Shown here piece after piece: positions 508-53,010 of a stretch of DNA of 64,000 nucleotides (the first letter of the stretch is position 1; every line of letters begins with the position of its first letter). Location: the sequence record MW349129.1. One strand, written 5' to 3'. The notes beneath the pieces were generated by a model, which searched no databases, had not been told where the DNA came from, and saw only the letters and a list, made by a program, of their open reading frames with translations. The position numbers and the translations under genes were made by a program.

Positions 508-2709
508 ATGCCAAAAGAAATAGACTTAAATTCAGAAAAATTTAAAGATTATTCATATAATGAATTAAACTCAAGAGGTTCACAATTAAAAGATGGTAAT
601 TTAGATTTAGAATTTGAATTAGCTTCAACTAACAAATACTTTTTAGATAAGGTAAACAAAAATGTAAGATACTTCAAAACATATAAAGAAAAAATTAATT
701 ATTTAGTTGATAATGATTATATTGATGGAGATATGATCAATAATTATGATTTTGAATTTATTAAAGGATTAATGAAAGAATTGATGGCTTATAAACATAG
801 ATTTACTCGTTTATTAGGAGCTAAAAAATTCTATGAACAGTATGCAATGAAAGACGATGCAGGAGAAATCTTATTAGAACTATATGAAGATAGAATTTTA
901 TTTGTAGCTTTATATTTAGCCGATGGTGATGAAGAATTAGCTAGAAATATTGCTAATGAAATTATTACAGGTACTTTCCAACCTGCTACACCAACATTCC
1001 TTAATGCAGGTAGAGTACGTTCTGGAGAATTAGTAAGTTGTTTCTTATTAACTATGGAAGATTCTTTATCATCTATTTATAGAAATATTTCTAATGTAGC
1101 TCAATTGAGTAAACGTGGTGGAGGAATTGGAGTATCTTTAAGTAATTTACGTGCTGATAATGATCCAATTAAAGGTGTTGAAGGTGCAGCTTCAGGAGTA
1201 GTTCCAGTTATGAAAGTATTTGAAGACACTTTATCATATGTAAATCAATTGGGTCAACGTAATGGTGCAGGTGCACTTTACTTAAACATCTTCCATAAAG
1301 ATGTAGTGAAATTCTTAGATACTAAGAAAGAAAATGCTGATGAAAAAGTAAGATTAAAAACTATTTCATTAGGTTTAACAGTTCCAGATAAATATTATCA
1401 ATTAGTTAAAGAAAATAAATCATTATATACATTTAGTCCATATGATATTAAAAAATATTATGATTTAGATTTCGATAGTATTGACTTTAATACTTACTAT
1501 GATATCTTTGTAGATGATAAACGTATTGGTAAAGAAAAAATGTATGCTCGTGATTTAGAAACTACTATTAGTAAATTACAACAAGAATCTGGTTATCCTT
1601 ATATCATTAATATTGATACTGCTAATAGAGCTAATCCAATTAGTCACGGTAAGATTAAAATGAGTAACTTATGTTCAGAAATTTTACAAGTACAATATCC
1701 TTCATTAGTTGACGATAATCAACAATATGTTAAAACAGGAACAGATGTTTCATGTAACTTAGCTTCAACTATCGTACCTGGTTTAATGAAATCAGAAGAC
1801 TTTGGTAAATCAGTTGGAACTATGTTAAGAAGTTTAAATTCAGTAGCAGAAAAATCTAATATTGAAGCTGTACCTACAGTTAAGAAAGCTAATGATCTAT
1901 TCCATACAGTTGGATTAGGTGCAATGGGATTACACACTTTCTTAGCTGAAAATCATATTCAATATGGATCAGAAGAATCTAAAGATTTCACTAATATTTA
2001 TTTCATGTTATTAAACTATTGGACATTAGTTGAATCAAATAAAATTGCTAAGGAGAAAGATGAATCATTCTATTTATTTGAGAAAACTGAATATGCTGAT
2101 GGTTCTTACTTTGATAAACGTTATATTGGTAAAAATATTCAACCACGTACTGAAAAAGTTAAAGAATTATTTGAAGATATCTTTATTCCATCTGATAGTG
2201 ATTGGGAACAATTAAGAAATAATATCGTTATGGATGGTTTATACAATCAAAATAGATTAGCTGTAGCACCTAATGGTTCTATTGGTTATGTTAGAGAAGT
2301 ATCACCTTCAATTCACCCTATTGTTGAATTAATTGAAGAACGTGTAGAAGGTAAAACAGGTACTACTTTCTATCCAGCACCAGGTATTACACCAGACAAC
2401 TTCGAATACTTTAAGAAAAATGCCTATCAATTAGATATGAGAGATATGATTGATTTATATTCAGAAGCTCAATATCATGTGGACCAAGGTATTTCTATGA
2501 ATATTTATTTAATGAATGAACTTGATCCAGATCTTTATGAATGGAAAAAAGATTCTCTAGATAAAGAAACAACTACAAGAGATATTAGTAGATTACGTAA
2601 CTATGCTTATAGCAAAGGTATTAAATCTATGTATTATACTCGTATTTATTCACCAGACCATGATGAGAACTCTCAAGGTATTGTTGAATGTGAATCATGT
2701 TCAATTTAA
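508..2709 (+). CDS. nrdE: Class Ib ribonucleotide reductase alpha subunit
   Basis: PATPTFLNAGR, LVSCF, SNLCSEI, SCNLAS, APNGSI, KSMYY and C-terminal CESC; no ATP cone; no intron or intein seen. Confidence 0.97.
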   Translation: MPKEIDLNSEKFKDYSYNELNSRGSQLKDGNLDLEFELASTNKYFLDKVNKNVRYFKTYKEKINYLVDNDYIDGDMINNYDFEFIKGLMKELMAYKHRFTRLLGAKKFYEQYAMKDDAGEILLELYEDRILFVALYLADGDEELARNIANEIITGTFQPATPTFLNAGRVRSGELVSCFLLTMEDSLSSIYRNISNVAQLSKRGGGIGVSLSNLRADNDPIKGVEGAASGVVPVMKVFEDTLSYVNQLGQRNGAGALYLNIFHKDVVKFLDTKKENADEKVRLKTISLGLTVPDKYYQLVKENKSLYTFSPYDIKKYYDLDFDSIDFNTYYDIFVDDKRIGKEKMYARDLETTISKLQQESGYPYIINIDTANRANPISHGKIKMSNLCSEILQVQYPSLVDDNQQYVKTGTDVSCNLASTIVPGLMKSEDFGKSVGTMLRSLNSVAEKSNIEAVPTVKKANDLFHTVGLGAMGLHTFLAENHIQYGSEESKDFTNIYFMLLNYWTLVESNKIAKEKDESFYLFEKTEYADGSYFDKRYIGKNIQPRTEKVKELFEDIFIPSDSDWEQLRNNIVMDGLYNQNRLAVAPNGSIGYVREVSPSIHPIVELIEERVEGKTGTTFYPAPGITPDNFEYFKKNAYQLDMRDMIDLYSEAQYHVDQGISMNIYLMNELDPDLYEWKKDSLDKETTTRDISRLRNYAYSKGIKSMYYTRIYSPDHDENSQGIVECESCSI

Positions 2710-2725
2710 ACAGGGGGTATTTAAT

Positions 2726-2944
2726 ATGACATTAAAAGAAAAATTTGAAAGTAAATATAGAAATTTAAATAAAGAACCAGAAATTTTAATTGTAGTTATA
2801 AGTTTACCTAGTGGAGCTAAGGAAGTAATTTCCAATAGCTCCGATCTAGATAATAAAGTACATTATTATCTGGAAACATATGATAAATTTTTTAGACATA
2901 ATAGAGATCATAATGTCAAAATAATTGATTTTATATTAGTATAG
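2726..2944 (+). CDS. Small hypothetical phage protein (72 aa)
   Basis: GGGGGT SD then ATG at 2726 (MTLKEKF...); the track start at 2603 overlaps nrdE. Confidence 0.75.
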   Translation: MTLKEKFESKYRNLNKEPEILIVVISLPSGAKEVISNSSDLDNKVHYYLETYDKFFRHNRDHNVKIIDFILV

Positions 2945-2965
2945 AGAATAAGGAGAGTTAATTAG

Positions 2966-4033
2966 ATGACAGTAAAAGGAAGTTTTTTAACAAGTAATAA
3001 AGATGGGAACTATATTCCAATGAACTGGAATAATGTCGATGATTATGTAGATATCATGACATTTGATACATTGGTATCACAATTCTGGACTTCAACACGT
3101 ATCCCTGTTTCAAATGATATTAAAGCTTGGAATGGTTTAGACGATAATACAAGAGATGTAGTTAATAAAGTATTTTCAGAATTAACTATTCTTGATACAC
3201 TTCAATCACGTGAAGGTGCAGATGCTTTAGTACATCATGCTCTTACACCTATGGAAGAAGATGTTTTAAATAATATTAGATTTATGGAAACAATTCATGC
3301 TAGATCTTATTCTACTATCTTTACTACATTATGTAGTTCTAAACAAGTTGACGAGAATTTTAAATGGGCTAGAGAAAATAAATATGTACAAAAAAAGATT
3401 AAATTAATCAATGATGCATATCAATCTGATGATATTATGAAAGTGCAAGCTGCTTCAGTATTCTTAGAATCATTCTTATTCTATTCAGGTTTCTATACTC
3501 CATTAAGATTAAAAGACAGTCTTAAATCAGTACTTGAAATTATAAAACTTATTCTTAGAGATGAGTCAATGCATGGTACTTATATTGGATATAAATTTGG
3601 AAAACGTTTTGAAAGATTAGAAGAAAATGAACAACAAGAAATTAAAATGTGGGTTACTTCTTTATTATTTGAATTATATCAAGTAGAATGCGAATTTATT
3701 GAAGAAGTATACACTGAAATTGGATGGGCTGAAGATGTTAAAATCTTTGCTCAATATAACGCAAATAAAGCTTTATCAAATCTTAAATTAGATCCTATTT
3801 TTGAGACTACTGAAGAAGATGTAAATCCTATTGTAATGGCAGGACTGAAAACTTCTACAGGAAACCATGATTTCTTCTCTCAAGAAGGTAATGGTTATTT
3901 AATTGGTAAAGCAGAAAATACTAGAGAAGAAGATTATGATTCAATTGATGTTAATGAACTTAATAAGAATATCATTGATTCATATAAAGATAAAGCAGAC
4001 GATAGATTTAGTCATAGTTATTATATAGATTAA
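2966..4033 (+). CDS. nrdF: Class Ib ribonucleotide reductase beta subunit
   Basis: LDTLQ, METIHARSY (radical Tyr), LESFLFYSGFY, RDESMHG, NHDFFS. Confidence 0.96.
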   Translation: MTVKGSFLTSNKDGNYIPMNWNNVDDYVDIMTFDTLVSQFWTSTRIPVSNDIKAWNGLDDNTRDVVNKVFSELTILDTLQSREGADALVHHALTPMEEDVLNNIRFMETIHARSYSTIFTTLCSSKQVDENFKWARENKYVQKKIKLINDAYQSDDIMKVQAASVFLESFLFYSGFYTPLRLKDSLKSVLEIIKLILRDESMHGTYIGYKFGKRFERLEENEQQEIKMWVTSLLFELYQVECEFIEEVYTEIGWAEDVKIFAQYNANKALSNLKLDPIFETTEEDVNPIVMAGLKTSTGNHDFFSQEGNGYLIGKAENTREEDYDSIDVNELNKNIIDSYKDKADDRFSHSYYID

Positions 4034-5312: not shown

Positions 5313-8300
5313 ATGGCAGACTTTATGTATCTCCATCCTTCTGTACAAACACAAATCAACTCTTATCAAAATAATTACCCTACAGCTGAAGGTCCTGTAA
5401 CATTATTTGCTGCAGACACTTTTGAAAAAGGTAAAGATGGAGTTATTGATTTTGTTGGTACTGAAGAAGAATTTATTTTTAAATATGGTGAACCAAACTA
5501 TACGAAATACGGTCAAGCCGCTTATAACGTCATGAACTGGTTACGTTCTGGTGGACAAGCTTATGTATTACGTGTATTACCTAAAAATGCAACTTACTCT
5601 CATGCTATATTAAACGTACAAAGTAGAGTACAAAAAGATGGTAAAAAAGTTTTAACAGATGCAAATGAATTAGTTAAAATTGATGACGTTAAAATTCGTC
5701 CAACAATCGCATTTGTTAAGAAAAATAATAGAAATATCGAAGAATTAGTTAACGAAATCACTTTAGATCGTGGTAATGAACAAACAGTAGACGGTTATAA
5801 TAATAACTTCTTACTTTTAGCTTATCCAAATGGTCGTGGTGAATCTTATAATGATTTAGGTATTCGTTTAACTTTAAATACTTCATATGACACTAGTGGT
5901 CGTACTGAACGTGTTTATAACTTAGAAGTACTTGAATTTGATGAATTCAGTAACGTTAATGTAATTGATGGACCATTCTTAGTTACATTTGATCCAGATT
6001 CAATTTCAGATACTGGTGAATCAATGTTCATTGAGGAAGTTGTTAATCGTTATTCTAAATACGTTAATATCAAATTTAATTTAGAAAACTTCCAAAATTT
6101 AGCTAAAGAAATTAACCCTAATGTACATCCTGCAAGTATTGATGTTATCTCTGGTAAATCTAAAGTTAATATTGATGGAACTCCTGAAACTTTCTATTCA
6201 GAAAAAACTAAACAATCTGAAGATATTCATATCGCTTTACACCGTTACAATAATAAAGGTGTACCAGTAACTATTAGTAGTAAACCTGTATTGAATAAGC
6301 CTGATTTTAACGATCCAGTTGAAAATGCATTAATCTCATTAGATAATGGTATGCGTGAAAAAACTTTCGTTACAGATTCAGATCGTCTTTCTTACATGAG
6401 AGATCAATACAAAACTTTACGTTCTGATAGCTTTACAGAATTTAAATCATTATTAAATAAAATTATTGTACCGGCTAATGGTTTATTTGAAGATGATGCA
6501 GGTGACTTGCCTAAAACTATTAAAGAAAATTTAGTTTCTGCAAAATTAACTCAAGAAGATGTAACTGCAGATATCAGTGATGAAGAAGCAGTTGAAGAAG
6601 AATTAGCTGGAAAATTCAAACCTTCTGAAATTAATTTTGGTGGTACACCTGCTGGAGCGGCTGAACGTTTAGTTCAAGATTATAACACTTATTTTGAAGA
6701 TTCAAATGAAGAAAATCTTTCTGCAGTACTTTCAGGTACAGAAGAAATTGGTTCTTTATTATTAAATGAATTTTTAGATAATGGTAATAGACTTAATGCT
6801 GCTTACGAATTAGTATATAAATCTAATTCAGGTATTTCTTCAAATCCTAAATATCAAGCTGATGTTAAAGAATTACGTGACGTATTGTCTCAAAAAGACC
6901 AAATCCGTATCTTTGGTATTCAACATAAATCTAATATCTTAGATATTACAAATGATATTGCTGAATTACGTATTGGTATGAAATCAGTTACTAATTTAGA
7001 AGGTATGTCTAAAGTATTAAATGATACTGAAACAGAATTACGTTATGTAATTGATAACTTAATGCCAGCAGTTCGTGAAGGACTTCCTGAAGAAGCAGTT
7101 AACTTTATTAATACTGTTCCTGATGGTGACGATGAAGACACAGAACGTGACTTAGTTTCTCCAGAAGCTATGTTAAACTCATTAGCTGACAAACAAATGT
7201 TAGTTGACGATATTAGCTTAGGATTAATGGAAGATAATGCGGCTAACCGTGAAGAAGTATTTGTAGCTTGTAATGAAATAGCTAACCAATTAGTTGATTT
7301 AATTAACCGAGCTGTTTCAGTAGCTTCTGTATACAAAGTTGCTCGTGCAGTACGTATTGCAGCTAATACAATCTATTATGATATTTCTATCTTCCGTAAA
7401 AATATTGATGAAATGATTCAAACTCGTTCTAACTACACAGAAAGAGATATTACATTGAATGCTCATCAAAATATTGAATTAGCTGTTGCTAACTTGAATA
7501 AAGCTAACTCTAAATACTTCAATACAAATCTTATTGATGTATCTAGTCCAGTTAAATTCTTATTCGGTTCTGATGGCGACTTCTCATATGCTGAAGATAT
7601 TTCATATAAAGATCGTAAAAACTCTGTTAATCGTGAATTAATTAAAGCTTATAAAGGTTTAGTAGATGAAGAAATTACAAATACTAAAGCTTATCCATTT
7701 GATGTTGTTCTTGATGCTCGTTATTCTAACGAAGTTAAGTTCGCTATCTCTGAATTAGCTAAAAGTGTTCGTAAAGACTTTGTATTCTTAGCTGATACGG
7801 TTACTGATCGTTACCCAGTTAGTCCTGAAGATGCAATTAGATGGAGAAAAGAAGAATTTGCTGTTTCTTCTGAGTATACAGCTATTTACTCTCAAGATTT
7901 AACTTACTATGATGAGTACACTGGTAGAGACATTCGTTTCACACCAACTTATCGTTTAGCTTCAATGATTCCTTATCAAGCTGTTAACTCTGGTTTACAC
8001 TTCCCAATTGCAGGACCTAGACGTGGATTAGTTGAAGGACATAAAGCTTTATCTTGGGCTCCTAATGAACCTTATAAAGAAAAACTTTATACTTCTAAAA
8101 TTAACTACATTGAAAAAGATATTGATAGAACTAAATTTGGTGCACAAATGACTTCTATTAAATCTGATGGTCCTTTATCTAACTTGAACAACATCTTTAC
8201 ATTAAATCAAATTAAACGTGATGCAGAAACTCTTGTTTCTGATTACCAATTTGAATTAAATGATGATGAAACTCGTTCAATTATGGGTACAGAGTTGAAT

Positions 8301-42734: not shown

Positions 42735-43968
42735 ATGTCTAATCAAGATAATAAATATGAACGTAAAAGAGCTATAACAGGTTATTTAGAGAATTTAATC
42801 AAATTAATTAAAATAAGAAAACCTGATATTGATAATGAAAAATTAATTAATGCTTGTAGAGAGTATATTAAAAAACATGTAGATCCAGCTTTAATAGAAA
42901 TATCTGGACAAAAAATGAATGTGGATACAACCTTAAGACAAATTATTGATAATAATTTAATTGTAACTGGGTCTGGTTCTATTTATCAACCTCAATCACA
43001 AAGAAAAAATTTAAATGCAGATATGTTAAAAGACTTTATAGATTCTCGTAAAGTAGCTAAGCACAATATGTTTATTTATAAAGGTAAAGATGATGTTTTA
43101 CATGATAAATATATGAATGAACAAAAAACAATTAAGATCTTAGCTAATAGTTATTACGGTGCTATGATTCAGAAGAATAGTACATTCTATGATTCTAATT
43201 CAGGTCCAGCAACTACTTATAGTGGTGTTGATATTGTAACTACTTCAGCAATAGCTTTAGAAAGATTTATTGGTGGTAAAATCTTCTTTATGAATATTGC
43301 TGAAATATATCATTATATATTAAGAATAATTAATGAGAAATATGAAGATCATGATATTAAGATAAAATCAATTCCGACTGATAGAAAAATTCTAGAAGAT
43401 TTAGTTTCTAATATTGAAGAAGATTATAGTGAAGAAGAGTTTCTTAAATTAGAAGATGTATTTAGTAAATTAAGTCAAGAAGATAAAAATAAAGTATATT
43501 TCAAAAATAATTTATCTGGATTAATTGATCATACCGATATATTTGAGAATAAAATTAGCAAAATGACTGGTAGAGAAGATTTCTTAGATCCAAACGAACC
43601 ACCTGAAGATTTGATTCCATTATTAGATGAATTATTTGAGATATTAAAAGATTGGGTTATATATAATTATCAAGATTACAATAGAATGTATAGAATGAAT
43701 TACAAGAAACGTAGAAGTGTTCTCACAATTGACACAGATTCAAATTTCGTTCACTTAGATCCATTATATGAAAAAATGAAATCATTAAAACCTGAAGATT
43801 TCCCTATTGCAGAAAATGGTTTAGAAGATAAATTAGAACAACGTGTAGGTAATATATCTATTATTAACTATCAAATAACTAAATTATTAGAATTATCTTA
43901 CTATAGATTCTGTAAAGATGTAGGATTAGAAGAAGAACATTTAGGTTTAATATCAATGAAAAATGAGT
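42735..43968 (+). CDS. Family B DNA polymerase (split type), exon 1
   Basis: KILANSYYG (motif B), TIDTDS (motif C); joins 44155-44855 to give a 644-aa protein. Confidence 0.88.
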
Positions 43969-44154
43969 ATTATCAAGTTAATGCTCCGTTGTATAGTGAT
44001 ATACAGAAAGACAAATTTATTAATTGCTGGGATAATTCATTAATTAAATCAGCATCTTAAGAAATTAAGTTCAACGACTAAATATAAATATACTTAATAT
44101 AAAGTATAAGATATAGTCTAATCTTTGTTAAATTAATAAAGACTAATAAAAATG
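43969..44154 (+). ncRNA. ORF-less group I intron (186 nt)
   Basis: AATTGCTGG (P), AATCAGCA (Q), GTTCAACGACTA (R), AAGATATAGTCT (S); P1 GAGU/GCUC with U.G pair; terminal G; splicing restores MKNE-F-LLDKQ..KKKTYAS. Confidence 0.9.
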
Positions 44155-44855
44155 TTTTACTTGATAAACAATTAACAACTGATAAAAAGAAAACTTATGC
44201 ATCATCAGTAATTCAACAAGAAGGTAATTTAGTTCAACCACCAGATTTAGATGTTAAAGGTATGGCTATCAGAAAAGTAAATACTAATAAACGTATTAGA
44301 GAATTATTTACTGAAATATTACAAAAAGATATTTTAGAAAATAAAACTGGTGTAGATCGTATTAAGATAATACGTAAATTTAAAGATATTGAAGAAATGA
44401 TTAAGAAATCATTAGATAATGGAGAAATTGAATTCTTAAAACCATTTAAGGCTAATAATGCTGAGGTATATAAAGATCCTTACTCTCAAATGGCATATAG
44501 AGCTGCTTTAGCATGGAATATAATGTACCCAGAAAAAGAAATAGCACTACCTGCTAAGATATTAGCAGTTAAATTAAATATTAGTACATTTGGAGATATT
44601 AAAAATAAGATAACTGATGAAGATACTTTAAATAGATTTAGAGAAGTATTTAAGAATGAAAGTTTAGTTAAAAATGGTTTAAATGTAATTGCAGTTGAAG
44701 GTAATACAATTCCTGAAGAGTTTAGACCTTTTATTGACTATGATAGTATGATTGAAGATCATATTAAACCAGGTAAAGATATTATTGAATCTATAGGAGT
44801 TAGAGTATTGGAATCTTCAAATAGCTCATTTGTATCTAATATGATTAAATTCTAA
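44155..44855 (+). CDS. Family B DNA polymerase, exon 2
   Basis: KKKTYAS..QEG..LDVKGMAIRK (KxY motif, thumb); open in frame upstream of the track ATG at 44262. Confidence 0.88.
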
Positions 44856-47645: not shown

Positions 47646-47678
47646 GCCATGTTAAGTTTATAGCTTAACATGGCTTTT
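47646..47678 (+). terminator. Intrinsic terminator overlapping a near-match late promoter
   Basis: GCCATGTTAAG / CTTAACATGGC then TTTT; AACA-TGGCTT-T at 47667. Confidence 0.7.
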
Positions 47679-47724: not shown

Positions 47725-49077
47725 ATGAAAATAGATATGATCAACGTTGATCAAATTATTACAGCTTATGAAGCTAAAGAAGTTACAAACCCTATTTTCT
47801 TTGATTCAGGAACTTTACCTAAAGAAGACGGTTTATTCTCATATGAAATATTTGGTTTAATAGGTACTGATGAAAGAAAGAATAATGTAGGTTGGATTAA
47901 TCTAGGCGGTAAATACCTAAATCCTGTAGCTTATAAATCTATGAAAGAATTAGATAAAAATGTCGATTTATGTATTCAGGGATCTGATTACTTTAAAATT
48001 GAAAAAGGGCAATTAGTTCCAGATGAAAATGGAGAAACTGGGTTAAATTTCTTATACGATAATTATGAAAATCTTAAATTTAGAAAAAATGATTCTCGTA
48101 TCCGAAATGAAAAAATTGATATGCTTAAAAATACTCCTAAAGATAGAATATTTACAGATAAATGGCCCGTAATACCTGCTTTCTATCGTGACTTTAATCC
48201 TAATGAAACTTCAGGAGAAATTCAGGATACTGAAGAAATAAATGATATGTATGCAAGTATCTTAAGATCTGTAGATTCAATTAGTTTTAATTCATTTGAA
48301 TTTGTAGCTAATACGACTAAATATAATATTCAAAATAAATTATTTGAAATATATGTTAAATTAACTTCAGGTGAACTATCAGGTAAAACTGGTATGATGC
48401 AAAGAAATATTTTAGGTAAAACAGTAGATAATAGTACTCGTTCAGTTATTTCTTCACCTAAAATTAATTCAAATAAATGGAATGAAATGCAAATTGAATT
48501 CGGTCAATTAGGTGTTCCGTTAACTCAATTAATAACATTATTCTTACCTTTCTTTAGCAAATATATTATAGACTTTATTGAAATTCATAAAGATGCTTTC
48601 CAAACTGCTACTGGAACTGATGAAAAAGAATTATCGCTAGAAGAAGTATATGAACAATTTGATGATAAATCTATTAAGAATATGTTAGAATTCTTTATTA
48701 AAGATCCTAATGAAAGATTTAGTCCTATATATGTAAATGACAGACAAGGTAAACGTCATAAAGTTAAATTATTTGAAAATACTTTAGGCAGAACTTTTAC
48801 TGTAATTGATTTACTTTATATAGCTGCTACAGAGATATGTGAAGATAAGCATGTAGTTTATTCAAGATATCCGATTGAAAATTTCTTGAATGTGGCTCCC
48901 GCTAAAATTAAAATATTAACTACAGTTGATACAATTCCAGAAATTACTTTAGATGATATTGTACTTAAAGATTATCCTAAAGTTGTTCATGAATATCCTG
49001 TTGATGAAGATGTATTTATAGATACTGCTATTATACACAACAGTTATGCCGGAGCACTTGGAGCAGATTTTGACGGT
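47725..49077 (+). CDS. rpoC: Phage multisubunit RNA polymerase beta-prime N/M subunit, exon 1
   Basis: DGLFSYEIFG, PVIPAFYRD, GKTG..RNILGKTVD..RSVI, SRYP, GADFDG; no zinc-finger cysteines in the region A zinc-binding position. Confidence 0.9.
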
Positions 49078-49103
49078 AAAAAATTTCTTTCCATTCCCCA
49101 TGA

Positions 49104-49115
49104 AACATTAATCTA
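49104..49115 (+). promoter_or_regulatory. Intron-internal putative late promoter for the endonuclease
   Basis: AACA-TTAATC-TA, 16 nt before the SD. Confidence 0.55.
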
Positions 49116-49143
49116 TTAATAAATAGATATTGGAGAGATAAAA

Positions 49144-50280
49144 ATGGTAATAAAAACAATTGATGAAATTAATAAAGAATTAAATGATAAAAATCTATTT
49201 CTGCTAGAAGAGTACAAAGGAAAAGTTGCGTATGAGCATAAGTTAAAGTGTGGAATCTGTAATACAATATTTGATAAGAAACTTAATTATGTATTTAGAA
49301 ATGAATTAGGGTGTAACGTATGTGCAAAAGAGAAAAGATCTAATACTAGAAGAGGTAAGAATTATCTAGAAAATATGATTGGTAAAGATGAAAATTACAA
49401 GTGGTTGGAAAAATTACCAAAATATATTAAAGATATAAAAAAAGTTAAACTTCGTATATTGCATGAAGATTGTGGTAATGAGTATCTAGTTTCTGTCACA
49501 CAGTTTCAAAAGGGTAAAGGTCGTTGTAAGTTTTGTTATAAAATGAATAATGAAATTATAAATGCACCTTTAAATGAAAATTACCAAAATATCATTAATG
49601 AAAGAAAAGAAGAAAGAACCAAACAGAGAAATGATATTAAAAAAGATAACAGAAGATATAGTAAAGTAAATACTAATATTCTTGAAGAGTCTATTCAAAA
49701 AAGAATGGATGGAAATGAATATGAATGGCTAGAAGAATACTCATATAACAATAAAGATAAACACTTCATAAAGCATAAAAAATGTAATTATGTATACGAA
49801 GTACGTCCTAATGATTTTCAACAAGGTTACAGTTGTCCAAATTGTTCTCGTAAATCTAGTAAAATAGAAAGAAATATTGTAAAGTATCTATCAGAAAATT
49901 CTATTTCATTTGAATTAGAAAGAAAATTAGATGTATATAAATACGATATCTATTTACCTGAAGAAGAGCTTTACATTGAAATTGATGGAGAACAGCATTT
50001 TGACAAAGATAGTACTTGGAATCAGAAAAGTAAAGTAGTAGAAAATGATAAAAAGAAAAATGAATTGATTATTAAAAACAATTTAAAACTATTAAGAATA
50101 GCTTTTCATAGTAAAAAAGATAAAATCAAAGATACAATGGAATTATTTGATTCTTTTATGAATAATGGAAAATTAAATAATAAAAGAATATCTTTATTAA
50201 AAGAAAGTGAAGATGATTTATCAGATTACTATGAATTCAATAACCAAAGATCTATTAGAAATCTATATTGCCGTCATTAA
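49144..50280 (+). CDS. Intron-encoded homing endonuclease (zinc-ribbon repeats plus Vsr/DUF559-like EDxHD-type nuclease domain)
   Basis: Three C/H-x2-C..CxxC units; YDIYLP..YIEIDGEQH..NDKKKN..LLRI. Confidence 0.82.
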   Translation: MVIKTIDEINKELNDKNLFLLEEYKGKVAYEHKLKCGICNTIFDKKLNYVFRNELGCNVCAKEKRSNTRRGKNYLENMIGKDENYKWLEKLPKYIKDIKKVKLRILHEDCGNEYLVSVTQFQKGKGRCKFCYKMNNEIINAPLNENYQNIINERKEERTKQRNDIKKDNRRYSKVNTNILEESIQKRMDGNEYEWLEEYSYNNKDKHFIKHKKCNYVYEVRPNDFQQGYSCPNCSRKSSKIERNIVKYLSENSISFELERKLDVYKYDIYLPEEELYIEIDGEQHFDKDSTWNQKSKVVENDKKKNELIIKNNLKLLRIAFHSKKDKIKDTMELFDSFMNNGKLNNKRISLLKESEDDLSDYYEFNNQRSIRNLYCRH

Positions 50281-50549
50281 ACCTTTTGAACTGCTGGAAG
50301 TTTTCTATAATTTAATTAACTACAAAGTAACTGGAAACGGTAAGCTTGAATGTCTGAAAATAATTAAATTGAAATAATCAGCATCGAAGATCCTTTAAAA
50401 TGGATAACGTTCAACGACTATCGAAAAGTGAGCTTTATGTCGAGAGGACCTATTGCAATATAACTGAGTAGAGTAGGGATATGGGGAATCCCGAAGCGGA
50501 AGGGAGTATATAGTAACGCATATACTTATGATATAGTCTAATACAAATG

Positions 50550-50708
50550 GATATGATCTCTATAAGATCTCTTTGGACAGTAGAAGCAAATAAAGAAGCT
50601 AATAAACTTCTTAATAAGAAAACTAACTATCTAAACTACACTGGTAATTCAGTACGTAATTTGGGTAATGAGAGTGTACAAGCTTTATACTCTTTAACTA
50701 AAGAATAA
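50550..50708 (+). CDS. rpoC: RNA polymerase beta-prime subunit, exon 2
   Basis: DMISIRSLWTVEANKEA..ESVQALYSLTKE*; completes GADFDGD; spliced protein is 503 aa; absent from the ORF track. Confidence 0.88.
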   Translation, partial: DMISIRSLWTVEANKEANKLLNKKTNYLNYTGNSVRNLGNESVQALYSLTKE

Positions 50709-50719
50709 TTTAAAAAACT

Positions 50720-50750
50720 GAGGTAACGGACAATTATAGTTCGTTACCTC
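50720..50750 (+). terminator. Terminator after the RNAP gene
   Basis: GAGGTAACG / CGTTACCTC. Confidence 0.7.
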
Positions 50751-50784
50751 TATTATATTGCAAAAATGTATCTAATGATATTTT

Positions 50785-50804
50785 AAATATATATTATAAT
50801 TATG
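50785..50804 (+). promoter_or_regulatory. Putative early promoter
   Basis: AAATATATATTAT-AATTAT-G plus hairpin AGTTGAT/ATCAACT. Confidence 0.7.
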
Positions 50805-50854
50805 AAGTTGATAATTATTAATCAACTAATTTAAATAAAAAAGGATGATAAATT

Positions 50855-51151
50855 ATGACAATCAAAATTATTAAAAATGAAATGCTACAGGAAGCTGTAG
50901 AAGGAAAAGAGAATAACGGTGGAGGTTACGAACATACTCGTACTGTTTTCGAATTCCAAGGAAAACAAGGAGTTTTCGAAGACACTTCTTGTGGTGATTT
51001 CGGTAGCAGATTCTTCATGGAATGGGATGGAAAAATGGCTATGTGGGGAAGTATGATTGATGAAGAATTCGAATACAGTGAATTCGATGAACAAGAACAA
51101 TCAGAACTTCTAAAGCATTTTAGTGTTCCTGTTTTTGAAGAAACAATCTAG
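50855..51151 (+). CDS. Small acidic early protein (monocistronic)
   Basis: About 22 D/E versus 8 K/R in 98 aa; own promoter and terminator. Confidence 0.85.
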   Translation: MTIKIIKNEMLQEAVEGKENNGGGYEHTRTVFEFQGKQGVFEDTSCGDFGSRFFMEWDGKMAMWGSMIDEEFEYSEFDEQEQSELLKHFSVPVFEETI

Positions 51152-51308: not shown

Positions 51309-51791
51309 ATGATATATTACAAAAATAAAGTAAATAATGAAATATATGAAGTTAATAATATTCATAGAAAGGATGATGCTTTTTATTATGTGTTTGGTAA
51401 TGAATTTAAAAAAGAAAGAATGGAATTATATGAATCAGTGGGTAAAAAAATTGATTTATTTGATAAAGATAAAGGACATAAAGAATTAAACTTCCAATTA
51501 AATTATGACTCATCTAGATTATTTTTAGTTACACATATGAAATATGATAATAATAATCCTTTTGCACCTAAAGTAGTAGATTTAAAGAATCAAAATCTTG
51601 TCTCATCTGATTCTTCAGAAGATCTTTACTATATATTATATAAAAGAATGTGTAATGCAATAGATATACCTTTATTAAATTATAATATATTATTAAAAGA
51701 ATTTAATTTTGATAATGAAGACATATTTAAAATAATACCAGAAGATTGTAAAGAAGTAAAAGATTTTAAAATTAGAAATCTTTTTAAATAA
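51309..51791 (+). CDS. Tag-family protein (paralog of 52519-53010)
   Basis: MIYYKNKVNNEIYEV...IRNLFK. Confidence 0.85.
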   Translation: MIYYKNKVNNEIYEVNNIHRKDDAFYYVFGNEFKKERMELYESVGKKIDLFDKDKGHKELNFQLNYDSSRLFLVTHMKYDNNNPFAPKVVDLKNQNLVSSDSSEDLYYILYKRMCNAIDIPLLNYNILLKEFNFDNEDIFKIIPEDCKEVKDFKIRNLFK

Positions 51792-52518: not shown

Positions 52519-53010
52519 ATGGATATGATATATTACAAAAATAAAGTAAATGGTGAAATATATGAAGTTAATAATATTCATAGAAAAGATGATGCATTTT
52601 ATTATGTATTCAATAATGAATTTAAAAAAGAGAATTCGTCTTTTTATAAATCTTATGGTAAAAAGATTGATTTATATGATGAAGACGTAGGAAGTATAAA
52701 ATTGGAGTTTTTCTTAATTTATGATTTTATTAATCTTCATTTAACTACACACTTTTCTTGGGATTTTAATAATATTCCTTTTATACCTAAAAATATAGAA
52801 TTAACAAATCAAAATCTTGTCATATCAGACTCTTCAATTGATCTTTATTATTTATTCTATAAAAGAATATGTGATGTGATAGATATAAATATGGCACATT
52901 ATAATATTCCATTAGGAAAATTTAATTTTGATAATGGAGATATATTTGAAATAATATCAGAAGATTGCAAAGAAGTAAAAGATCTTAAAGTTAGAAATCA
53001 TTTTAGATAA
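52519..53010 (+). CDS. Tag-family protein (paralog of 51309-51791)
   Basis: MIYYKNKVNGEIYEV...VRNHFR. Confidence 0.85.
   Translation: MDMIYYKNKVNGEIYEVNNIHRKDDAFYYVFNNEFKKENSSFYKSYGKKIDLYDEDVGSIKLEFFLIYDFINLHLTTHFSWDFNNIPFIPKNIELTNQNLVISDSSIDLYYLFYKRICDVIDINMAHYNIPLGKFNFDNGDIFEIISEDCKEVKDLKVRNHFR

Follow-up and report, generated by a model that had tools for sequence, protein, structure and literature searches.

The window analysed here, the whole 64,000 nt stretch taken from record MW349129.1 (100% identity), belongs to Staphylococcus phage Madawaska, an AR9-like jumbo phage of 265 kb whose DNA is presumed to contain uracil (bioRxiv 10.1101/2020.12.14.422802). Window position 47725 is record position 109725, and the gene and intron analysed below, with their parts, lie on the plus strand. 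From this position runs the gene for the N-terminal part of the virion RNA polymerase (vRNAP) beta-prime subunit, which is split by a group I intron of 1472 nt (49078-50549) that contains a homing endonuclease open-reading frame (ORF) of 378 amino acids (49144-50280). In GenBank the host gene, CPT_Madawaska_113 ("viral RNA polymerase beta-prime subunit, N-terminal"), is given as a two-piece join "predicted based on alignment", and CPT_Madawaska_114 ("homing endonuclease") lies inside the gap of that join, so the intron and its endonuclease were already known at this gene. The Madawaska introns were predicted from protein alignments only, and RNA structure is absent from the paper describing them (bioRxiv 10.1101/2020.12.14.422802). 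What was new in the original prediction, a reading made from the letters of this DNA alone, is the architecture of the intron and not its existence.

Host gene and intron boundaries

Exon 1 (47725-49077; PHROG 2986, RNA polymerase, E 7e-97) ends in GADFDG and is collinear up to its last base with the genes of four relatives, S6, DC4, PALS_2 and SA1, which are intron-less at 90–96% exon identity and encode the subunit in an uninterrupted 1512 nt gene. When aligned by blastn to these alleles, position 49077 abuts 50550 in all four and the boundary is unambiguous: the intron, AAAAAA...AAAUG, is flanked by GAC-GGU at the end of exon 1 and by GAU-AUG at the start of exon 2, and no shifted boundary fits. 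The insertion point falls within the catalytic motif DFDGD, between the G and the last D (GADFDG|D), exactly at the 5′ splice site originally predicted (49077/49078). Exon 2 (50550-50708) reads D-MISIRSLW...TKE followed by a stop and completes DFDGD. The U at position −1 of exon 1 and the G at the 3′ end of the intron (omega-G, 50549) are those that group I introns require. Two consecutive in-frame stop codons, UAA UAA (49117-49122), close the reading frame that continues from exon 1 (ORF 47725-49119) and would release exon-1 ribosomes 14 codons into the intron; stops just past the 5′ splice site are typical of phage group I introns (PMC3073962, PMC3984707).

A hairpin resembling an intrinsic terminator marks the end of the transcription unit at 50720-50750 (computed, and present among the GenBank terminator features), a matching hairpin lies upstream of the gene at 47646-47674, and a terminator scan found none inside the intron. 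The endonuclease ORF is therefore probably co-transcribed with the polymerase gene. An internal promoter using the early motif TATATTAT was considered and rejected, as the motif is no more frequent than expected by chance and is absent from the intron.

The guide sequence and a predicted long-range P1

The internal guide sequence (IGS) of a group I intron pairs with the end of exon 1 to form paired region 1 (P1), and we searched for it across all 1472 intron positions. The best complement to the exon end is 50270-50276 (GCCGUCA), which forms 7 bp with UGACGGU at 49071-49077, six of them Watson–Crick pairs and the seventh the splice-site G·U, with U49077·G50270 heading the helix. It is also the sole candidate with a P10 directly 5′ of it, where UAUAUU (50264-50269) pairs with GAUAUG at the start of exon 2 (50550-50555) in 6 bp including two G·U pairs. 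A P1 of at least 6 bp together with a P10 of at least 5 bp arose in 0.7% of 2000 dinucleotide shuffles. This guide lies in codons UGC-CGU-CAU (Cys-Arg-His) of the endonuclease, just ahead of its stop codon (UAA, 50278-50280). The claim that 50270-50275 is the only good IGS, placed in the final codons C-R-H-stop of the ORF, is thus upheld by the full-intron scan, the shuffles and the covariation described below; the P10 claimed next to it is likewise present, but consists of six contiguous pairs and not of the 8–9 nt originally given. A cryptic guide closer to the splice site, in the 66 nt that precede the ORF (49078-49143), was also sought and rejected, the best match there being 4 bp without a G·U.

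The endonuclease ORF separates the guide from the 5′ splice site, and P1 has to close across some 1.19 kb. In an unconstrained ViennaRNA fold of 49040-50590 (1551 nt) this long-range P1, extended to 49071-49079 with 50268-50276, is part of the minimum free energy structure, with pair probabilities of 0.51–0.61.

Five related phages, MarsHill, LY01, Machias, PB50 and AH12, carry ORF-less introns of 149–158 nt at the same DFDG|D site, in which the guide lies 10–13 nt past the splice site and is likewise directly preceded by UAUAUU. MarsHill and LY01 read exon GACGGU | AAGU-UAUAUU-GCCGU-AUUUAAAU, Machias, PB50 and AH12 read exon GAUGGC | AAAAUUU-UAUAUU-ACCAUC-AUUAAAU, and Madawaska reads AAAAAAUUU...[insert]...C-UAUAUU-GCCGUC-AUUAAAC, so that by sequence the Madawaska P1 resembles a Machias-like P1 whose loop is interrupted by about 1.18 kb. 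The two strands of P1 covary between Madawaska and the Machias, PB50 and AH12 introns (GACGGU/GCCGUC vs. GAUGGC/ACCAUC): where exon position −4 changes from C to U the guide changes from G to A, and where −1 changes from U to C the guide again goes from G to A, which turns U·G into C·A. A profile built from 12 of these mini-introns matches Madawaska in collinear order at 50258-50317, where the match begins in the P10/guide segment, at 50372-50420 and at 50525-50542, and finds no match in 49078-50245.

Complementarity, covariation, collinearity with the profile and the fold all place the ORF in the loop of a P1 spanning 1.19 kb, and the closure of P1 over the whole ORF, as originally proposed, is supported in silico by the shuffles, the covariation, the mini-intron profile and the unconstrained fold. 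A long-range P1 would not be needed if the ORF segment were removed or cleaved first, either as an inner intron of a twintron or by an RNase. We regard this as extremely improbable: introns can indeed be densely packed in the phage clade, LY01 having three of them in 745 nt, but nothing direct points to such processing here, whereas the absence of a profile match in 49078-50245 argues against a twintron, Rfam also gives no second ribozyme signature in this segment, the segment is one continuous conserved ORF with a 66 nt leader, and the long-range P1 is already thermodynamically favoured.

The ORF-less introns of the MarsHill-like phages (140–190 nt) share with Madawaska the DFDG|D site, the P10–guide–J1/3 string (J1/3 joining P1 and P3), the order P3-P4-P6-P7 and the lack of P2. 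They differ in having a P1 loop of 10–13 nt, a P9 hairpin, no P7.1/P7.2 and a small or absent P8, whilst in Madawaska P1 contains the ORF, P5 is extended, P7.1/P7.2 and P8 are present and P9 is missing.

The splice-site pair of some of these introns is itself unusual. In Machias (locus L012:6531-6560), PB50 and AH12 (loci L013 and L014) the last exon base is C, not U, and stands opposite a guide A, a natural replacement of the near-universal U·G pair by C·A; a neighbouring intron of AH12 also has C at −1.

The ribozyme core

The catalytic core was originally placed after the ORF, and it is found there: RF00028 matches 50255-50561 across P3, P4, P5, P6, P3′ and P8 (model positions 27-253, 42.4 bits against a gathering score of 50, E 9e-10, in a search of 311 nt). 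Rfam returned no match at the gathering score in the whole window, nor at E ≤ 10 in a 1.9 kb stretch. The core extends over 50281-50538 (P3 to P8 and P7′), as delimited by the RF00028 alignment, the alignment with relatives and the mini-intron profile matches, and is 73–79% identical to the rec-gene introns of Kayvirus and Silviavirus phages. We placed the helices on an alignment with these rec-gene introns, a LY01 intron and a metagenomic intron. P3 is formed by 50282-85,87-88 with 50497-98,50500-03, P4 by 50292-97 with 50378-83, P5 and its extension occupy about 50301-50376, P6 is formed by 50385-86,90-93 with 50402-05,08-09, P7 by 50416-21 with 50533-38, and P8 by 50505-11 with 50520-26. 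Compensatory changes support P3 (U-A to A-U), P6 (G-C to C-G, A-U to C-G), P7.2 and P8. A 75 nt insert between P7 and P3′ is the P7.1–P7.2 region of IA-type introns (50422-50494), with a co-varying P7.2 hairpin (50476-80 with 50488-92) and an invariant GAGUAGAGUAG block common to Madawaska and Twort-like phage introns.

As the guide is followed by AUUAA and then directly by P3, the intron has no P2, and with just 11 nt between P7′ and the terminal G it has no P9 hairpin. The core is IA2-like (T4 td/Twort type) in that it carries P7.1/P7.2, whilst the P2 and P9 (P9.1/9.2) domains of that subgroup are absent.

The missing P2 and P9, together with an RF00028 score under the gathering score, would also suit a decayed intron that no longer splices, leaving either two polypeptides, residues 1-464 with a read-through tail and a 53-residue peptide started at an AUG (50547-49) in frame with exon 2, or a dispensable gene. 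No RNA run containing the intron was found, which this reading would also accommodate. We nevertheless consider it very improbable. The core helices, the U·G pair, omega-G, P1 and P10 are all intact and co-vary with those of relatives, the split would separate the three catalytic aspartates, and the phage is a viable isolate (bioRxiv 10.1101/2020.12.14.422802). The terminal AAAUG is shared by the ORF-less introns at DFDG|D and is therefore a feature of the intron and not a start site.

The endonuclease

The endonuclease ORF, which fills the P1 loop, is preceded by a Shine–Dalgarno sequence, GGAGAG (49132-37), and was assigned by Pfam, PHROG 559, an AlphaFold model and fold search. It contains three treble-clef zinc-finger repeats (Pfam DUF4379; its protein-atlas neighbours carry DUF723/CapR) followed by a C-terminal domain with a weak DUF559 match. 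Among 28 homologues D268, E279, G282, H285, D302 and K305 are invariant; E279, D281 (at least 90%), H285 and D302 are thus invariant or nearly so and are candidates for the catalytic E, D, H and D of EDxHD enzymes. Searches against PDB sequences with the single sequence, a profile and the domain alone gave nothing meaningful, but in a Foldseek search the AlphaFold model (mean predicted local distance difference test, pLDDT, 76.6) best matched the catalytic domain of I-Bth0305I (3r3p; template modelling (TM) score 0.69 over the target, probability 1.0), then Vsr (1cw0, 1vsr). These matches identify the modelled enzyme as a Vsr-like homing endonuclease, probably of the EDxHD, I-Bth0305I type, with zinc-finger repeats and not as an HNH enzyme. 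The name "HNH endonuclease" of PHROG 559 appears to be a label only, as Pfam gives no HNH match and the structures retrieved by fold are Vsr-like and not HNH.

The C-terminal tail is poorly conserved. Roughly half the homologues terminate around residue 343, only 7–15% align at residues 374-378, and the unconserved tail (344-378) is predicted to be disordered, with pLDDT below 50 at residues 346-357 and 364-378. It is this tail that overlaps the splicing helices, the last codons AAU-CUA-UAU-UGC-CGU-CAU-UAA covering P10, the guide and J1/3.

As in other mobile introns, an intact endonuclease ORF with conserved residues is found alongside intron-less alleles in close relatives. The exons are also mosaic in their identity: Madawaska and MarsHill share 99.5–99.7% over the first 1161 nt of the gene, yet between the two intron sites (gene positions 1162-1353) Madawaska shares 92.7% with MarsHill and 98.4% with S6. 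This pattern would be consistent with recombination or co-conversion tracts at the intron sites and may be taken as the sole indirect hint of homing.

Apparent recurrence of the ORF-in-P1 layout

Judged from sequence, the same layout appears to recur in two other jumbo-phage introns, with the ORF stopping just before the guide in each. The first is a 1552 nt intron in a 265 kb uncultured jumbo phage (JGI Ga0484773_000006; locus L015:2417-3968), which splits a prohead protease (Peptidase_S77) gene at YDWV|T. Its ORF (2501-3619) is 29% identical to the Madawaska endonuclease, its 5′ splice site after ACUGGGU was set by comparison with the intron-less protein of Listeria phage LPJP1, its guide GCUCAGU (3624-30) lies 4 nt past the ORF stop, and an RF00028 core of 42.4 bits follows downstream. 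The second is a 1728 nt intron of PB50 (OR770614; locus L024:1369-3096), which splits the non-virion RNA polymerase (nvRNAP) beta-prime gene at the paralogous DYDG|D. There a homologous zinc-finger/Vsr-like ORF of 504 amino acids begins some 63 nt into the intron and terminates 6 nt short of the assigned guide, its stop codon being followed by UUUAUU-GCCUUCA and then by a 136 nt mini-type core (nhmmer E 3e-22).

Two metagenome DNA runs contain a Madawaska-type intron, ORF included, with about 95% identity, and one contig from them spans 48600-50316. A diverged, shorter endonuclease (47% identity, P0004/P0005) is placed between a 464-residue ORF and a 53/54-residue ORF, as in Madawaska, and the same endonuclease family occurs at a different position in MarsHill intron 1. 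No close relatives of the endonuclease were found in IMG/VR, and a metagenome scan for it gave only relatives of 26–35% identity, without intron cores.

Overlap of the ORF with the splicing helices

The last five sense codons of the ORF and its stop cover P10, the 3′ strand of P1 and J1/3. When a ribosome reaches the stop codon it would hide P10 and the guide together with the 5′ strand of P3, and so translation of the last codons and formation of P1 could not coincide on one molecule. The original prediction went on to infer that endonuclease translation and splicing exclude each other; an antagonism between the two is on this analysis plausible, and the question is whether it has been selected.

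If it has, the placement of the guide in the last codons would be a switch: ribosomes terminating at 50278-80 would melt P10, P1 and P3, and each precursor would yield either endonuclease or mature polymerase, the two being traded off. The geometry suits such a switch, since the stop codon has the guide 2 nt upstream of it and P3 1 nt downstream, so that a terminating ribosome must cover all three strands; even in the two sister introns, where the stop lies 4–6 nt upstream of the guide, the guide would still be inside the ribosome footprint. A natural analogue is also established by experiment in the T4 td intron with I-TevI (Gibb and Edgell 2010, as relayed in PMC3073962 and PMC3984707). Possible hairpins sequestering the Shine–Dalgarno sequence exist in all three introns. 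In Madawaska the minimum free energy and centroid folds pair the C-rich 49086-93 with the Shine–Dalgarno region (49132-37), enclosing a 7 bp inner hairpin (49111-17 with 49124-30), in a structure covering 49086-49138 (−11.3 kcal/mol). Its z-scores (−1.1 to −1.6) and those of the analogous sister folds (−1.7 and −0.7) are weak, and that it damps translation is suggestive only.

Against a selected switch, the overlap of ORF and guide is not conserved among the three introns, being absent in the two sisters, and the overlapping tail is unconserved and predicted to be disordered. A stop beside the guide is moreover automatic when a cassette without a 3′ untranslated region enters a loop of 10–13 nt. 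Occlusion by ribosomes would also be short-lived, and as the ORF stays complete in the excised intron, Shine–Dalgarno sequence included, this RNA could serve as mRNA without any conflict with splicing. For these reasons the overlap fits an incidental "core creep" (PMC3073962) better than a selected switch, which we think unlikely; we read it as core creep, perhaps at a modest cost to splicing.

Further introns and neighbouring genes

Other introns of the clade were noted in passing. Near the 3′ end of the beta-prime N-terminal gene (S6 gene position 1475/1479) MarsHill, LY01, Machias, PB50 and AH12 have a group I-like insertion of ~140 nt (MarsHill L002:3614-3753; LY01 L007:~2871-3013; Machias L012:~6786-6953). 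Its pairings are clear (P1 GAGAGU/GCUCUC, P10 GUACAA/UUGUAU), it has no P2 and almost no P8, and the MarsHill coding sequence in GenBank ends early instead of splicing it out. These insertions are smaller than the smallest intron reported for Bastillevirinae phages, 173 nt (PMC11878797).

LY01 has five insertions in this gene in total, three of them introns packed into 745 nt of the active-site coding region (L007:2004-2748) with micro-exons of 14 and 9 nt between them. The first of these introns has a large, Madawaska-like core without an ORF, and no boundary for it gives a reading frame, a U at −1 and a terminal G together.

Madawaska itself has a second mini group I intron, ORF-less and of ~189 nt (window 43967-44155, core 43988-44145), in the DNA polymerase gene CPT_Madawaska_108, which is also annotated as a join. 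It belongs to the family of the 150 nt introns of the sister phages (nhmmer E 1.6e-29) and is absent from S6, DC4 and PALS_2. Its boundary is ambiguous over 8 nt owing to AAAAATG repeated at both ends, and if it ended at G44154 the last exon base would be G and not U.

Downstream of the vRNAP gene, in a run of small genes of unknown function, the ORFs at 51309-51791 (160 amino acids) and 52519-53010 (163 amino acids) are clear paralogues, both starting M(DM)IYYKNKVN.EIYEVNNIHRKDDAFYYVF...

Discussion

Taken together, the evidence, which for the structure is computational throughout, argues, with a probability of about 0.82, that the Madawaska element is a mobile group I intron in which an endonuclease cassette occupies P1, which would be spliced through a P1 of 1.19 kb and in which the overlap of ORF and guide is likely incidental. 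A cassette of 1.18 kb, made up of a 5′ leader with a Shine–Dalgarno sequence and an EDxHD/Vsr-like gene, would have been inserted into a P1 loop originally of 10–13 nt. The gene would be transcribed as a single unit, ribosomes from exon 1 would halt at 49117, and P1 would form over 1.19 kb once the guide and core had been made. Attack by GTP at 49077/49078 would then be followed by ligation to exon 2, aligned by P10, restoring DFDGD. The endonuclease would be translated from the precursor, from the excised intron or from both, and would cut intron-less alleles of the S6, DC4, PALS_2 and SA1 type, driving homing. That the ORF continues across P10 and the guide and stops in J1/3 would most likely reflect an incidental 3′ extension, whose side effect is that ribosomes on the last codons would transiently block P1, P10 and P3.

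Several points weigh against this account. The RF00028 match lies under the gathering score and was missed in whole-window scans, and the intron lacks the P2 and P9 hairpins. Thermodynamic folds of a 1.5 kb AU-rich RNA are unreliable, and real folding is co-transcriptional. The guides of the uncultured-phage and PB50 introns were assigned by position and profile register and not as the longest complement, and we infer the activity of the endonuclease and its target. No public RNA run holds the intron; the RNA runs that match derive from an intron-less, SA1-like relative. In two of them (X13 and X14, searched with window 48600-51000) contigs of 90–95% identity span both exons, encode ADFDGD without interruption and include the extra ORF that follows the gene in SA1, so the gene is transcribed in a relative, but as the source phage is intron-less these exon–exon contigs are uninformative on splicing.

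The placement of an ORF in P1 is unusual for a phage gene, yet it has precedents, and the element looks like an ordinary mobile intron. In the Physarum Ppo.L1925 intron (I-PpoI) and the myxomycete S1389 ribosomal DNA introns the endonuclease gene also lies in an extension of P1, which closes over the ORF. These introns differ from Madawaska in their nuclear ribosomal DNA location, their His-Cys box enzymes and the lack of coupled translation, and no overlap of ORF and guide is listed for I-PpoI, whereas Madawaska has one. The excised I-PpoI intron can serve as mRNA.

The tRNA-fMet intron of Synechocystis PCC 6803 (I-Ssp6803I) is a bacterial group I intron whose ORF in P1 overlaps core pairings and whose nuclease also belongs to the restriction-endonuclease-like superfamily. 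Its overlap with P1/P2 is, however, 61 nt (PMC3073962 Table 1), against 17 nt including the stop in Madawaska, where only P10, P1 and J1/3 are involved. It also differs in its host gene, a tRNA with no exon translation, in its subgroup and in having P2, and I-Ssp6803I is a classical PD-(D/E)XK tetramer, unlike the Vsr-like/EDxHD Madawaska enzyme with its zinc-finger repeats.

In T4 td, as in Madawaska, the 3′ end of the ORF forms part of helices needed for splicing, but the I-TevI ORF lies in P6a and overlaps P6a/P7 and not the guide, and its product is a GIY-YIG enzyme. According to PMC3073962, the ribosome-binding site of I-TevI is sequestered by a hairpin and premature translation impairs splicing. 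Regulation is thus experimentally shown in td/I-TevI, whilst in Madawaska we infer it.

PhiPA3 gp210 had been cited as a precedent for intron endonucleases of jumbo-phage polymerase genes that attack co-infecting intron-less phages. The precedent is real, though not of the same type: in Birkholz et al. 2024 (PMC11620839) a putative group I intron interrupts a jumbo-phage vRNAP gene at conserved catalytic aspartates and encodes an endonuclease that targets the intron-less allele of a co-infecting phage, but gp210 is an HNH nickase in the beta-subunit gene of a nucleus-forming Chimalliviridae phage, against a Vsr-like enzyme in beta-prime here. I-Bth0305I, the EDxHD enzyme of the recA intron of Bacillus phage 0305phi8-36, is likewise encoded by a phage group I intron and is the best fold match of the nuclease domain; the Madawaska enzyme has no detectable sequence similarity to it and differs in its N-terminal part of three treble-clef zinc-finger repeats (DUF4379/DUF723). 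For Bastillevirinae phages, an intron survey reports cases with a ribozyme signature on one side only of the nuclease loop (PMC11878797). Our limited literature search turned up no account of ORFs placed in the P1 loop within protein-coding genes of phages, nor one of the structure of the Madawaska intron.

A wider scheme for the AR9-like jumbo phages of Bacillota can be drawn, although we consider it improbable. These phages would hold a minimal (140–190 nt), P2-less intron lineage in which only the P1 loop takes the zinc-finger/Vsr-like cassette, with the ORF always ending at the guide. Terminating ribosomes would in that case time or chaperone the formation of P1 and couple the supply of the catalytic vRNAP (DFDG|D) and nvRNAP (DYDG|D) subunits to endonuclease expression, with C·A or other non-U·G splice-site pairs used and micro-exons of 9–14 nt tolerated.

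There is no new mechanism here, as P1-located ORFs, the overlap of ORF and core and the conflict between translation and splicing all have precedents. What the analysis adds is a coordinate-level structural model for an intron marked in GenBank only as a protein-level join, and the reclassification of its enzyme as Vsr-like/EDxHD instead of HNH. As the endonuclease gene apparently lies in the P1 loop of three introns of this phage clade, recognition of the splice site must there span more than 1 kb of translated RNA. The intron-less alleles, the 150 nt ORF-less introns and the ORF-bearing intron form a natural series at one site, convenient for asking how ORF insertion, translation and a long-range P1 affect the splicing of an essential gene, and the same series can probe the role of the intron in competition between co-infecting jumbo phages with uracil DNA.

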